A stretch of DNA of 64,000 nt from Entomortierella parvispora E1425 (lineage: Eukaryota; Fungi; Mortierellomycota). The translations under genes were made by a program, and so were the position numbers. The notes under the pieces were generated by a model. That model worked only from the letters and a program-made list of their open reading frames with translations, was not told where the DNA came from and ran no database searches. The stretch spans positions 1,550,001-1,614,000 of the forward strand of contig BQFW01000011.1 of the NCBI GenBank assembly GCA_020891255.1, read 5' to 3'. Within the stretch, counting starts at the first letter, position 1. Every line of letters starts with the position of its first letter. Shown one piece after another: positions 8,772 through 15,281 of this stretch.

Positions 8772-10467
8772 ATGGCCACCGCAACGACAACAACAACACA
8801 GCAGGTTCAGCTGCAGCAAGTAAAGCCAGTTCAGCAGACACCTCAACAACAGCAGCAGCAACAGCAGCAAAAGGCACCTATTGCGAAGCCAAGAGATCCA
8901 TTCTGGCTCGGAGGTAAAGACAAAAGAAACCAGCTCCCACCAGTCAAAAGAAAAGAATACTTTTTTGACTCATAAGACGCAGGGGCGGGGTCTATTAATT
9001 CCTTGGTCGCCACCAATCCTCATCCTCGCTGTGGTGTGGACCAGTAGACGGAGCACGGCTGGGTCGTCGGACACAGGAACTGCAGGAAGAGAGGCGGTGG
9101 CTGGTTGGCATGGACCGAAGCATGCTGGAATGATGCCCATGACCCTCCCCTCTGTGCATGAGCAAGGACCAGCAAAAAGAGACAAAAAGAGACAAAATGA
9201 GCTGCAAGTGAACGAAGACTAACTTTCCCACCTTCGTCTTTATGACTATTTTCATCTTGTGCACTGTAGGCGCTGCTTCCTGCTCTGCTGCTCTCGTCTC
9301 CCATCCGTTCGATCTGACCAAGGTGCGCTTACAGACCACCCAGGGCGCCAGTTCTCAGGGAATGATCGGAACCATGATCAATGTCGCCCGTCATGAGGGC
9401 ATCTTTGCTCTCTACACCGGACTCTCTGCCAGCTTGTTGCGTCAGGGCACATACTCGACTGTGCGCTTTGGAACCTATGATCTCCTGAAGGAGAAGTTTG
9501 GACCCAAAGATGGAAGTACGTTTATGTCATCCAGCATGACGAGCACCTCGATCCCGATCTGCGTCTTTCTGTCACTTTTTTTTGTTTGTTGTTCTTACAA
9601 GGATGGAACAAGGCTGGCTGGCCTTTTTGCCATCGTTCGGTCCATTGTGGTCATGGGCGTATTTATCATTGCGGCGGGCAGTTGGAGGATGAACGGAGTA
9701 TCGGAGTCGAAAAAACAATGCACTTACACACAACCCAACCTTCTTCCTGTTATCTTTCTTGTCTGTTCTAGGCCGTATCCCCGTCAGCACAATGTTGCTC
9801 TGCGGTGTATTGGCAGGATGCATTGGAGGCGGATTCGGTAACCCAGCAGATGTGGTCAACATTCGTATGGTGAACGACGGCAAGTTGCCCAAGGAGCAGC
9901 AGCGACACTACAAGCATGCGTTCGACGGACTTTACAGGATCGCGAAGGAGGAGGGTCCTGGTCAATTGATGAGAGGTTTGGGACCCAACATGAACCGTGC
10001 CATCTTGATGACAAGTTCCCAATTGGTCTCGTACGATGGTTTCAAGCGGCAATTGTTGGCCACACCTTGGTTCAAGGACAACTTGGCCACTCATTTTGCT
10101 TCCTCGCTTTTGGCTGTAAGTTGCGCTATATCGTCTACAACTCTGCCTCTTTCTTTTTGTCCTCAGTGGGACTGAACAAACTGCAAGGATCAAGTGACTT
10201 ACTCACTGTCTTTTTTTTACAATCTGTCAATAGGGTCTTGTTGCAACGACGGTGTGTGCCCCATTGGATGTGCTCAAAACTAGAATTATGAACTCTTCAG
10301 GAGCATCAACATCTTCGACTCAAATGTTCTTCCATATTATCAAGACTGAGGGACCCACGGCGCTCTTCAAGGGCTGGCTCCCTGCTTTCTTGCGTCTTGG
10401 ACCTCACACCATTGTCACCTTTATTGTCCTTGAGCAGCTCAAGGTCCTTGTTCACCAAAAAAAGTAA
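8772..10467 (+). CDS. DIC1: Mitochondrial dicarboxylate carrier (SLC25A10 family)
   Basis: Four exons. PFWLGG|AASCSAA, three carrier signatures (HPFDLTKVRLQ, NPADVVNIRM, APLDVLKTRIM), GLSASLLRQGTYSTVRFG, RLGPHTIVTF. Confidence 0.9.
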
Positions 10468-11349
10468 ACTACAAAACACATAGACGAATAAACGCTAATT
10501 GCCCCCTCCAGACGTGATCCATGACGCAGGGACCAGGGGGAGAGAAGCAAGGAAGTAGATTGTCGAAGAACTCGGGACCTAGAGGGGTAGCAAAGGCCAG
10601 CCCACAATACCGCTATTCAGGCAACAGTGTTGCAGGAGACTAAGGAGCGCCGATGTTTGCCGTCTCCGCAACTCAGTGCCAAAGGTACAGTGTCTTCTTT
10701 TGAGATCCGTGCTTTGATATTAGGAAGTTGAGTCCTTTTATCTCACATCAAATGTGGTATGACCTGAAATGGAGCCGACAATTAACCCAATATTCACAGC
10801 ATTTTCCCTGTGAGATGTCTTCGTTCCCCATTTCCCCGCACATGGCTATCTCAGCATCAATGGAAACGTTCCCCCGGTCTATTGTTTGTTACCTGAAGAC
10901 CCCGGCATGATTGAAACTGAAGGAGGAGGCACAGGCAACAATTGAGTAAGGTTGGCTAGCGTTCAGGCTATGGTGCGTGGTGATACACGGACCTGAAGGG
11001 TCCATCCAGCGGGTGTTGCTGTTGGGAAGCCAAGCCCCATAACTATGAGAGTCAAAAATAGAGGATATCTGCTTAACCGTCAGGACAACAATGGTTGTCC
11101 AACCAGCAAGCATACATTGCACATGAACACAGAAATGGAATGCAACGGACAGCTAAATGAGAAATGAAGTGCGCGCCGCAACACACACGATGTCAATGGT
11201 GACGGTGACGAATGCGCGCTCGGACCTTTGTGTTTCTTTGCCACCTATCTTTTCCTCTTCTCTTCTCCCACCTTTCCGCACTTCAACATTTTCATTGGTA
11301 AGCTTCACATCCCTTCATGTCGTTTTCCTTCTTGTTTTTTTTTGTAGGA

Positions 11350-11855
11350 AGGTCTGGAATGTCAATTCAGTTTTCTTTAGCTGATGGGTCCCGGTGGTTG
11401 GGTGAGCCAACACAATCATGGGTGTTGCCTCTTGGACCTCCCGCTGCGCGTGCTTATAAGGGACCCATCCCCTTTCTCAAAAGGGAGCAGCTACTGTATC
11501 GCTGATGGTGGCGAGGCTGCTTTGACGCCCCTCCGACTACCTGGCTTGTCCATGGATTCACTTATAAGGGTGCCATCCATTCCATGCCTTCCATTCGTTT
11601 CGTTTTTTGTCCATTGGTTGAGTATGATAATGGTCTTGTACATGTCAAATTCAGTGTTCTTCAGCTGATGGGTCCCGGTGGTTGGGTGAGCCAACACAGT
11701 CATGGGTGTTGCCTCTTGGACCTCCCGCTGCGCGTACTTATAAGGGACCCATCCCCTTTCTCAAAAGGGAGCAGCTGCTGTAACGCTGATGGTGGCGAGG
11801 CTGCTTTGACGCCCCTTCGATTACATGGCATGTCCATGGACTATAAGGGTGCCAC
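11350..11855 (+). repeat. Tandem direct duplication, period 284 bp; ~200-bp core about 93-95% identical by eye
   Basis: ctgatgggtcccggtggttgggtgagccaacac... starts at 11381 and again at 11665. Similarity extends ~30 nt upstream (atgtcaa(a)ttcagt.ttctt.ag) and ends at tataagggtgcca (~11575 and ~11854). Confidence 0.96.
11381..11854 (+). ncRNA. Putative structured non-coding RNA, two tandem copies (11381-11578, 11665-11854); family unknown
   Basis: Perfect 10-bp stem gatgggtccc (11383-92)/gggacccatc (11460-69) enclosing a G-U-rich stem and an inner caacac/gtgttg hairpin. It is followed by a cccttt-ctca-aaaggg hairpin and an agcagc/gctgct stem. No motif of a known RNA family was recognised. Confidence 0.4.
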
Positions 11856-12694
11856 ACAATACTTGATCCTCTTGTCATATCCTTTCGATCTTTTACTCAC
11901 TTTGTCTGACTCTGATATCGAGTTGTGTTATTAACGCGCGTCTTTGACACTCTTCTCGTGGCTTGGGCGGAGTCATTCGATCATTATACTGCAGCAGGGA
12001 ATATTGCACTCTACCAAGTCCAGCAAGCGCCTTAGCCCACCAAGTCCATCAAGCATTTACTCTACGATGTCCGGCAAGCATTTTACTGTACCAAACATGA
12101 ACCTCTCGAACCAGGTGCTTAAAGGATAAATATCAGCTATGGTGCACGTCACCTAGTCGCGACAAAAACGTGGAAATCCCTATAAAGAAGCAAGCGAGGC
12201 CTTTTGATCGTAAAAGGCCCCGTAGTTGATTGATGCCTTTCACATCTTCAGGGCTACGATGCTATTTTCACCTACAGCCTTGACGGCAACTTGAGAGACA
12301 CTGTATCATGGCATGTCTCGATGTGAAAAGCGATCAAATAAAAATCTTCCTTTCATGTATTTGCTGTATTGCTCACGTGATCAGTTTTGATGTTGATCTG
12401 AAATGTCCGAATCTTCGGAGATGCTGTTCGGCATCCAGGCCGGATGAGTGCTCATTTTCCTCTTCTTTCTTCATCATTGCCTTTTCTTTCCACCTCCGGA
12501 CTAGGTGCCGTTCCCTTTTGTTTCCCCCTTCATCCTCCTCTGTGCCTGCCGTTGCTGTAGCACTCTCGTTCACTCCCTTGTACAACCGACTTTCCCTGTT
12601 TTAGAAACACGTTCAAAAAACAGGCACACGTTGCTTCGGACCTCTCTTCGCTTTCACTCCCCACTCTTTTCTCTACATATACCTTTCGCACACA

Positions 12695-15281
12695 ATGCTT
12701 CGCGCATTTGCTTCCAAATCCGCTGGACGTATTGCTCGCCAGGCTGGAGGTACAGTGCTACAGTGACCTGACCGGACCGGATGGACGAAAGATATGCAAG
12801 TCGCTCAATAGGTCGCATGCACCCCAATTAACACGCCATAATCCAAATCATTAGCACCCCGCCACTTCCGCACGTCGGCTGCTGTCAAGAACGAGGTTGA
12901 GGTCTTTGTCGATGGCAAGGCCGTCAAGGTCGAAGCCGGATCGGCTGTTATTCAAGCCTGCGAAAAGGCTGGTGTCCATATCCCCCGTTTCTGTTACCAC
13001 GAGCGTCTGTCTGTGGCTGGAAACTGCAGAATGTGTTTGGTTGAGGTGGAAAAGTCGCCCAAGCCCGTGGCCTCGTGCGCGTTCCCTGTCATGCCTGGAA
13101 TGAAGATCAAGACTGACTCCAAGTTGGTCAAGAAGGCGCGTGAGGGTGTCATGGAGTTCTTGTTGGCCAACCATCCTCTTGATTGCCCCATTTGCGACCA
13201 AGGAGGAGAGTGCGACCTTCAGGATCAGTCGGTCCGTTACGGATCGGACCGTGGTCGTTTCACAGAGGTTGTTGGTAAGCGTGCCGTTGAGGACAAGGAT
13301 CTTGGACCTTTGATCAAGACGACCATGACTCGTTGCATTCACTGCACCCGTTGCGTCCGTTTCGCGAACGAGGTGGCTGGATTCCAGGATCTCGGAACCT
13401 CTGGACGTGGAAACGACATGCAGATCGGAACTTATATTGAAAAGACCATGAACTCTGAGGTAAATTCGTCGCCCTGTTATTATTATTTTTTATTATCTCA
13501 AAATGCCAGCATCGGTTGAATGAGCAGCCTACTAATCTATCCCTTCACTCATTTTTTTTTTACAAATACCTTTTCTACGGATTATTTCTGGAATATTTTT
13601 GACATCCAACCCGACTACAATTGGATCACGGAACAACACTACGGACCCAACTTCAACAGCTCTCTGGAAACCTGGCTGATGTATGCCCCGTTGGCGCTCT
13701 TCTTGCCAAGCCATATACCTTTAATGCCCGCCCTTGGGAGCTCAAGAACACGGAATCGATTGATGTCTTGGACGCTCTCGGATCCAACATTCGTGTCGAC
13801 TCGCGTGGTGTTGAGGTGATGCGCATTCTCCCCCGTTTGAACGAGGAGATTAACGAGGAGTGGATTTCTGACAGAACTCGCTCGGCTTATGATGGTCTCA
13901 AGACCCAGCGTTTGACAACTCCTATGGTCCGCAAGGGCAATACGTTTGTGAATGTCAACTGGGCTGAGGCCTTGAACAAGGTGGCCTCGGAGATGAAGGC
14001 AGCTGGACCTGGAATCAAAGCCATTGCTGGACAATTGGCCGATGCCGAGTCCTTGGTCTCACTCAAGGATCTTGTCAACAGACTCGGATCGGAGAACGTT
14101 ACTGTCGACAACAAGCGTCAGGAGAACCCCGCCCACGGAGCAGACTTCCGTTCCAACTACTTGATGAACTCGACCATTGCTGGAATTGAACAGGCTGATG
14201 CTCTTCTTCTGATCGGTACCAACCCTCGTCACGAGGCCGCCGTGATGAATGCTCGCATTCGTAAGTCGTTTGTTTACAACGGTTTGAACGTCGGACTTGT
14301 CGGAGCACCCGTGGATTTGACCTATGACTATGAGCACATTGGTACCGACACTGCTTCGCTCGAGGCCTTGGTCGCTGGCAAGCACGCCTTCTCGGCCCAG
14401 TTGGCTGCAGCCAAGAACCCCATGATCATTATCGGAAGCGGCGTGAACGACTTGGCTGACAGTGAGTATGTCTTCTCGACCGTCTCCAAGATTGTCGACC
14501 AGCACAAGGACAAGTTCTTCCAGGAGAACTGGAATGGTTTCAACGTTCTCCAGCGGGTAAGGCATCTTTATGTTGTTCTCACCTGCGCTTATATTTGAAG
14601 TTTTTTTTTTTTTTTATGAAATGCTGACGAGAACGTGTTGCTGTTATTTAGGCTGCGGGCAGAGGTGCTGCTTATGACATTGGATTTGTTCCCCAGGCCA
14701 AGGAGGAGGATAAGGCCAAGTTTGTTTACTTGCTCGAGGCGGATGAGATCTCTGCCAGTGATATTCCCAAGGATGCCTTTGTCGTCTACCAGGGACACCA
14801 TGGAGATGTTGGAGCACAATACGCCGATGTGATCTTGCCAGGAGCCACCTATACTGAGAAGAGCGCCACCTACGTCAACACGGAAGGACGTCCCCAGATG
14901 ACTCGTGCAGCTGTTCCTCCCCCTGGCGCTGCTCGTGAGGACTGGAAGATCATTCGTGCGCTTTCAGAGGTCGCTGGAGCCACTCTTCCTTACGATGATG
15001 TTCACCAGGTCCGGGACCGCCTTCGTGACATTGCGCCCTCCTTCTCCCGTTACAACGTGGTCGAGCCCAGCTCTGTGGCCGTGGCCTCTTTGGGACTTTC
15101 CACCTTGAAGAAGGATGGAGCCAAGTCGGCCAAGACTGTGTTTACGCCTGTGATTTCTGATTACTACATGACGGACTCGATCACCCGCGCATCCTCTACC
15201 ATGGCCAAGTGCTCGGTTGCATTCTCCAAGGGCACGCATCCCCCAGAAGAGTCCGAGTTCAAGATCGAGGCAACTGCATAG
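12695..15281 (+). CDS. NDUFS1: NADH:ubiquinone oxidoreductase 75/78-kDa Fe-S subunit (complex I), mitochondrial precursor
   Basis: Presequence [15 protein letters not shown]; [19 protein letters not shown]; [19 protein letters not shown]; [13 protein letters not shown]; [12 protein letters not shown]; [10 protein letters not shown]. Three introns. Confidence 0.97.

Follow-up and report, generated by a model that had tools for sequence, protein, structure and literature searches.

A tandemly duplicated, conserved non-coding element between DIC1 and NDUFS1 of Entomortierella parvispora: an orphan candidate for a structured RNA

Why does one intergenic sequence of the fungus Entomortierella parvispora E1425 stand in two neighbouring, nearly identical copies, and could it act as an RNA? 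The sequence lies inside the 2.2-kb gap between DIC1, the gene for the mitochondrial dicarboxylate carrier, and the complex I gene NDUFS1, about 830 nucleotides (nt) upstream of the NDUFS1 start codon. It was studied in a 64-kb window (64,000 nt; contig BQFW01000011.1, positions 1,550,001 to 1,614,000 of the forward strand), to which all coordinates refer, and in a genome sequence of 20 contigs and 38.9 Mb. The published E1425 assembly consists of 19 contigs plus the mitochondrion (PMC8759367). An original prediction, drawn from the letters of the window alone, had described a tandem pair of highly structured RNA-like elements in a probable non-coding, spliced transcript.

The analysis identified a real, single-locus, tandemly duplicated non-coding element, conserved beyond this genome in at least two further organisms, for which a three-way-junction fold on the + strand is plausible. 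The element belongs to no described family and may be regarded as a credible orphan candidate for a structured RNA. That it works as a functional RNA module within a non-coding or leader transcript is given even chances. To our knowledge, hardly any structured non-coding RNAs have been charted in early-diverging fungi.

Repeat architecture and uniqueness of the element

The two direct copies align without gaps over 193 nt at 95% identity with a spacing of 284 nt, as the original prediction had described. A gapped alignment extends them to 11358-11578 (unit A1) and 11642-11857 (unit A2), with 12 substitutions, one 1-nt indel and one 5-nt indel. Each unit, read on the + strand, comprises a leader, a three-way-junction domain and a conserved 3' half. 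The units are flanked and separated by the spacers S1 (11296-11357), S2 (11579-11641, T-rich with a T6 run) and S3 (11858-11925), which are homologous in register. Semi-global alignment of S1 with S2 gave p = 0.002 against shuffled sequences and a score reached by none of 25 composition-matched genomic controls, and S2 with S3 gave p = 0.016 against shuffles. Since the spacers are in-register homologues and yet much diverged, the array has the layout S-A-S-A-S with old spacers and with units kept far better than the spacers between them. The divergence of the spacers also explains why Tandem Repeats Finder reported no repeat at the locus.

Spacer identity is roughly 60% with indels, against 95% for the units, and this difference points to constraint or gene conversion confined to the unit. 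A neutral history would involve the latter, in which a 284-bp intergenic segment was duplicated in tandem and partly homogenised by gene conversion, with look-alikes from close relatives whose intergenic DNA can still be aligned throughout and a fold that is a by-product of an inverted repeat. The presence of just two copies at a single locus fits such a history, while the gulf between the units and their in-register spacers speaks against it.

No further copy was found in the 38.9-Mb genome using BLAST, two motif patterns and the covariance model R1 built on the 87-nt hairpin of the unit (hairpin 1), and BLAST of the unit against the remainder of the window returned nothing significant. The covariance model likewise detected no additional copy in 80 metagenome loci. 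The four internal modules that had been predicted, each consisting of CTGATGG followed by TATAAGGG, are all present and confined to the locus, as the pattern CTGATGG N40-80 TATAAGGG occurred four times there and nowhere else in the genome, with 1+1 control matches. A separate short resemblance lies in the last exon of DIC1, where 15 of the 16 nt at 10390-10405 (TTGCGTCTTGGACCTC) agree with 11425-11440, in the 3' strand of hairpin 1, probably by chance (E = 1.9 within the window).

Dispersed copies had been named in the original prediction as the mark of a miniature inverted-repeat transposable element (MITE). Their absence from the genome in the BLAST, motif-pattern and covariance-model searches excludes a MITE or other dispersed repeat. 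A broader version of the idea sees the unit as the relic or domesticated piece of a mobile element, either a MITE-like foldback or an element with short terminal repeats (TG...CA) resembling a terminal-repeat retrotransposon in miniature. It draws on the perfect 10-bp inverted arms of hairpin 1 and on units that begin with TG and end with CA, with a 60-nt piece between them. It is considered very unlikely given the single locus, since a target-site duplication, a primer-binding site and a polypurine tract were not seen in the sequence, and the homologous flanking spacers indicate an array rather than an insertion.

Homologues in other organisms

Run by HMMER against 1.84 billion proteins, the translated 94-codon frame of unit 1 matched a short predicted environmental open reading frame (ORF) of 59 amino acids (aa) on an 8961-nt JGI contig (P0121, E = 6e-10), and a profile search then added a 49-aa frame on 880-nt ENA contigs (P0123). 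The codon sets of both were aligned to the DNA of the window. As the homologues are known as translations, a third of their bases is left unfixed. P0121 is collinear with 11359-11533; of its 173 aligned positions, 96 are fully fixed by the amino acids, and the alignment contains 14 definite substitutions and six 1-nt indels. For P0123 the collinear stretch is 11422-11565, with 9 definite substitutions over 143 positions. The reading frames of P0121 and P0123 switch relative to the window and to each other through 1-2-nt indels, demonstrating that the conservation is not that of a protein. The unit is thus conserved beyond this genome but non-coding, in support of the original prediction.

These switching frames also bear on the view that the locus is a small-protein or micro-exon gene, in which the 94- and 116-codon frames, or 21-nt exons lying between splice-like strings, are translated. 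The same relative frame is open through both units, and a splice model joining 11298, 11381-11401, 11665-11685 and 11995 stays in frame on inspection. However, five of the eight inter-copy differences in the shared frame change the amino acid, Pfam gave no match, and the sole database relatives are the two short ORFs whose frames disagree, so that a translated product is extremely improbable.

The flanking genes NDUFS1 and DIC1 were each searched exon by exon, by reference. The closest relatives of DIC1 and NDUFS1 in the protein database share 96% and 92% aa identity, respectively, and come from other Mortierellaceae genera. Because no relative of either protein exceeds 96% identity there, P0121 and P0123 probably come from other species or genera, and near-identical strains seem to be rare in this database. 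The lack of closer relatives also runs counter to a neutral duplication whose look-alikes derive from close relatives. Metagenomes scanned with the ORF of the unit yielded no match. The same kind of scan with NDUFS1 exon 2 found distant NuoG/NDUFS1 matches of at most 77% identity with no Mortierellaceae contig among them, and scans of genome contigs and viral contigs with the ORF alignment were also without a match.

Conservation is unevenly distributed along the unit, the well-kept parts being the leader (ATGTCAAATTCAGTGTTCTTCAGC), hairpin 1 and the first half of module 2. Hairpin 1 is the best-conserved part, with only four definite substitutions in P0121 and one inserted base in each arm of its basal stem. 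The hinge (11470-11505) of P0121 has changed at several times the rate of hairpin 1 (Fisher p = 0.014 counting substitutions, 0.006 when indels are added), a difference that neutral drift of a duplicated segment would not lead one to expect. The 3' half is also retained, with two substitutions and one insertion in P0123 over 11506-11565 and two substitutions in P0121 over 11506-11533.

Other features of the original prediction were not retained in the homologues. The first CTGATGG reads CGGNTGG in P0121 and the second C?GT?GG in both homologues, and TATAAGGG has become TATAAYGG in P0123, so the modules built on these strings, although present four times at the locus, are species-specific. The cccttt/aaaggg hairpin and the agcagc/gctgct stem are lost as well.

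Predicted fold of the unit

The minimum free energy (MFE) fold of both copies and the RNAalifold consensus place a three-way-junction domain at 11367-11505 on the + strand. Its helices are P1 (11367-11371/11501-11505), P2 (11378-11383/11488-11493), P3, which corresponds to hairpin 1 (11384-11468 within the junction), and P4 (11470-11475/11480-11485), which is short and variable, and they are joined by junction strands of 0, 1 and 2 nt. Hairpin 1 taken alone spans 87 nt (11383-11469), and its MFE fold contains the basal arms GATGGGTCCC (11383-11392) and GGGACCCATC (11460-11469) together with the inner stems, in agreement with the hairpin originally drawn. Its only inter-copy differences fall at 11415 in the loop and 11452 in the bulge, also as predicted. 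Compared with shuffled sequences, hairpin 1 alone is moderately stable (z -2.2 on the + strand and -2.8 on the - strand), and the three-way junction including the leader reaches z -2.7 in copy 1 and -3.8 in copy 2 on the + strand. Module 2, in contrast, which forms the 3' half (11506-11578), is conserved in sequence and not significantly structured, as its z values are -0.6 and +0.4 and the two copies fold differently. The description of the element as highly structured therefore holds for the 5' part with its leader and fails for the second module, and the agcagc/gctgct stem falls outside the best fold once the leader is included.

The leader had been regarded as a pyrimidine-rich stretch ending in a candidate AG acceptor. 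Its conservation equals that of the hairpin, and in the best fold it forms pairs with the hinge; for these reasons it looks like a part of the predicted RNA structure rather than just an acceptor. The leader-hinge pairing holds 4 of the 12 inter-copy differences. At pair 11378/11493, copy 1 has U-A and copy 2 has C-G, a compensatory change, and the copy 2 substitutions at 11654 and 11783 extend P1 to 8-9 bp in that copy.

The homologues provide further hints. The single bases inserted in the two basal-stem arms of P0121 occupy mirrored places, and the parsimonious reading would be that a U faces a G of an expanded G run. Three C-to-U changes opposite G occur in P0123 and one G-to-A change opposite U in P0121; if the partners, which are unseen, have stayed the same, such changes would keep pairing on the + strand RNA only. 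When each takes its own best fold, sequences compatible with P0121 retain 25-37 of the 47 reference pairs, compared with 12.9 +/- 9.1 in controls carrying an equal number of random changes.

Several observations weigh against a conserved + strand structure. The - strand yields folds of equal or greater stability (z -3.4 and -4.1), and with such similar z values folding energy cannot tell the strand, so the + strand preference voiced in the original prediction gains nothing from it. The compensatory pair has p = 0.27 when G-U is allowed, and its p = 0.044 under Watson-Crick pairing only belongs to a post hoc criterion. The p values for pair retention span 0.008-0.12, and in MFE the P0121-compatible sequences do not surpass randomly mutated sequences (p = 0.10-0.58). 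Neither P4 nor the agcagc stem is conserved, and position 11460 in P0123 and 11505 in both homologues break predicted pairs unless the unseen partner compensates. The compensatory readings hinge on parsimony choices, since the homologues are known as translations, and the relatedness of their hosts to E. parvispora is known only indirectly. Every structural test is weak taken singly. Altogether, a conserved RNA structure on the + strand receives moderate support, the data being consistent with it and short of proof.

The marginal structural statistics, the equal folding of the two strands and the only indirectly known relatedness of the P0121 and P0123 sources count in favour of a neutral tandem duplication. 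It is less easily reconciled with P0121 changes that keep far more pairs of the fold than random changes do and, with the evidence from spacers, hinge and flanking genes added, it is held to be unlikely.

The same palindromes may instead be read at the DNA level, the inverted arms and the TATA-like CTTATAAG motifs being protein sites of an enhancer, promoter or insulator for NDUFS1, DIC1 or both. The position some 830 nt ahead of the NDUFS1 start codon at 12696, the perfect 10-bp inverted arms, the 8-bp palindrome CTTATAAG and the strand symmetry of the structure by energy would all suit such a module. However, a stretch of 145-175 nt with about 90% identity is unusual in its length for a fungal cis-element, the G-U pairs of the stems and the C-to-U changes opposite G in the homologues keep the pairing of a + strand RNA and not a DNA palindrome, and TATAAGGG is altered in P0123 and CTGATGG lost in both homologues. 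A purely DNA-level role is accordingly rated as distinctly unlikely. The favoured reading, to which even chances are again given, takes each unit as a non-coding RNA element that is restricted to a lineage, maintained by selection and read from the + strand.

Transcription context, known RNA classes and related systems

Upstream of the array, a pyrimidine-rich tract (11224-11293, + strand) resembles a promoter or 5' end, a role that is inferred, and the donor-like string GTAAGC (11298-11303) directly follows it. Only nine + strand tracts of the window, this one included, reach at least 85% pyrimidine across 60 nt. Of the 15 others found when both strands are counted, most precede a plausible gene start on the matching strand, making a + strand transcription start just before the GTAAGC at 11298 plausible and bearing out the promoter-like character first ascribed to the tract. 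The originally listed AG strings at 11347, 11380, 11664 and 11994/11997 are likewise present along with the donor string, and the acceptor-like CTGCAG/CAG/ (11989-11997, + strand; slashes mark the possible cuts) could close an intron of about 700 nt from 11298. No convincing ORF was found downstream of the tract. The T9 and T6 runs in the spacers argue against RNA polymerase III (Pol III) reading through the array. The acceptor-like AG/CUG of the leader and a donor-like G/GUGAGC fall within the predicted helices P2 and P3.

Both flanking genes are on the + strand. DIC1, whose database relatives carry the name dicarboxylate transporter, lies upstream of the units, with a stop codon ending at 10467. 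Directly after its promoter tract, an ORF at 8772-8975 starts with MATATTTTTQQVQLQQ and contains a run of nine glutamines, which suggests a Thr/Gln-rich N-terminal exon ahead of the carrier domain. NDUFS1, downstream of the units, has its start codon at 12696, confirmed by the N-terminus of the Gamsiella multidivaricata protein P0139, its first intron at 12750-12854 and its second exon from 12855. Between the units and this gene, three head-to-tail copies of a 25-nt unit resembling CCAAGTCCAGCAAGC (12006-12081; 68-72% identity to the reference copy) begin just past the acceptor-like CAG/CAG at 11994/11997. A perfect 8-bp hairpin, GGCCTTTT-GATCGT-AAAAGGCC, lies at 12198-12219, between the units and the NDUFS1 promoter tract, and an AATAAA string occurs 3' of it at about 12339. 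A 98-codon ORF (12308-12604) has eight cysteines within its first 50 residues and a tail overlapping the NDUFS1 promoter tract; it is probably spurious, its sole Pfam match being weak (E = 0.09).

The known RNA classes were surveyed widely. Rfam searches with relaxed thresholds (1.7 kb, and 251 nt at E <= 10) and at the gathering threshold over the whole window returned only noise, the 251-nt search showing no C/D or H/ACA small nucleolar RNA (snoRNA), ribozyme, signal recognition particle (SRP) RNA, thiamine pyrophosphate (TPP) riboswitch, small nuclear RNA or RNase P/MRP match, in keeping with the originally noted lack of known-class motifs. A tRNA scan detected none at the element, Pfam on eight local ORFs gave no family match supporting coding units, and literature searches revealed nothing on such an RNA.

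The classes that had been named as candidates, namely snoRNA, ribozyme and microRNA-like RNA (milRNA) precursor, did not gain support from closer comparison. Box C/D snoRNAs bear a C box (RUGAUGA) near the 5' end, a D box (CUGA) near the 3' end and an adjacent terminal stem. The unit contains no TGATGA, its nearest string CUGAUGG is CGGNUGG in P0121, and no snoRNA family of Rfam was matched at E <= 10. A role as an rRNA guide was also rejected, as the longest run complementary to the ribosomal DNA unit of this genome with G-U counted is 15 nt, compared with a mean of 15.2 and a maximum of 20 in shuffled units. Full-length 18S rRNA genes occur on at least four contigs of the genome, the copy on contig C11 (5310-7107) being about 5 kb from the contig start. 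Box H/ACA snoRNAs follow a hairpin-hinge-hairpin-tail plan with an H box (ANANNA) and an ACA 3 nt from the 3' end. On inspection the hinge at 11470-11500 has no ANANNA and no ACA common to both copies follows the second half, hairpin 1 has a one-sided internal loop, and the second half lacks a stable hairpin. The hammerhead core is CUGAUGA...GAAA. Hammerhead and other small self-cleaving ribozymes were rejected in view of the Rfam result at E <= 10, the junction strand lengths and a CUGA that is not conserved. A milRNA precursor is a long near-perfect duplex yielding discrete 20-24-nt RNAs, of which hairpin 1, with an 18-nt one-sided internal loop and several bulges, is not typical.

Further candidates fared no better. 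For Y RNA, the Ro60/TROVE domain (PF05731) has no match in the genome, while control genomes give hits, and Rfam showed no match. SRP RNAs possess Alu and S domains and an invariant AGCA motif in helix 8. No SRP family was found on the element at E <= 10, and its SRP-like string GGGAGCAGC changes in both homologues. A whole-genome search with RF00017 (Metazoa_SRP) and RF01502 (Fungi_SRP) contained no SRP RNA among the 25-26 first-look candidates scored, probably a miss of the filter. Motifs like those of U1, U11, U12, U5 and U3 and a telomerase template, sought by eye, either differ between the copies or are lost in the homologues.

On the favoured reading of a + strand RNA element, whose transcription, strand, polymerase, processing and function are all inferred, the pyrimidine-rich promoter at about 11224-11293 would drive an RNA polymerase II (Pol II) transcript without a convincing ORF. 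This transcript would carry the two tandem units, either in a leader intron of about 700 nt (11298 to 11994/11997) or as retained exon sequence. The 5' 140 nt of each unit would fold into the three-way junction, in which the leader-hinge helices P1 and P2 enclose the 87-nt P3 and the short variable P4, followed by a conserved, mostly single-stranded tail of 70 nt, and P2 and P3 would bury the AG/CUG and G/GUGAGC strings. The likeliest role would be that of a stable protein-binding or processing module of the transcript, possibly acting in cis on NDUFS1. Identity of about 90% across species, while spacers and hinge decay, makes the element likely to be functional. If transcribed, it would represent a new RNA family for Mortierellaceae and a tractable case for leader-borne folded RNAs; were RNA sequencing to be blank, it would be merely a conserved duplicated intergenic segment.

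Among known systems, MITEs and foldback elements share with the element its short length and perfect terminal inverted arms, and differ from it in that the element occupies a single locus, has no target-site duplication and is part of a tandem array.

Fungal TPP riboswitches of the NMT1/THI4 type reside in 5'-leader introns, where the folded aptamer hides or exposes splice sites. The element recalls them in its folded multi-helix junction within a possible leader intron, in the AG/CUG and G/GUGAGC strings buried in predicted helices and in its place ahead of a metabolic gene that runs in the same direction. Unlike these riboswitches, it has no Rfam riboswitch match, no conserved junction core and no known ligand, and NDUFS1 has a pyrimidine-rich tract of its own and probably a separate start site. 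The bolder proposal modelled on them, that the two units serve as tandem sensor domains of a novel cis-regulatory RNA of eukaryotes in an NDUFS1 leader intron or upstream transcript, with a metabolite- or protein-responsive junction that hides or exposes the splice-like strings and thereby sets NDUFS1 output, is highly improbable.

Non-coding hosts of tandem or intronic small RNAs, including snoRNA host genes of the UHG/GAS5 type and the polycistronic snoRNA clusters of yeast and plants, offer another comparison. Their units are different guides, whereas the element consists of two copies of the same RNA, known here from sequence, which bears neither C/D nor H/ACA boxes and has no rRNA complementarity above chance. 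In organisation the two are alike, as both combine a Pol II-type promoter tract and the lack of a convincing ORF with an array of conserved structured units, between which lie U-rich spacers of poor conservation, and in both a terminal helix joins the two ends of each structured domain.

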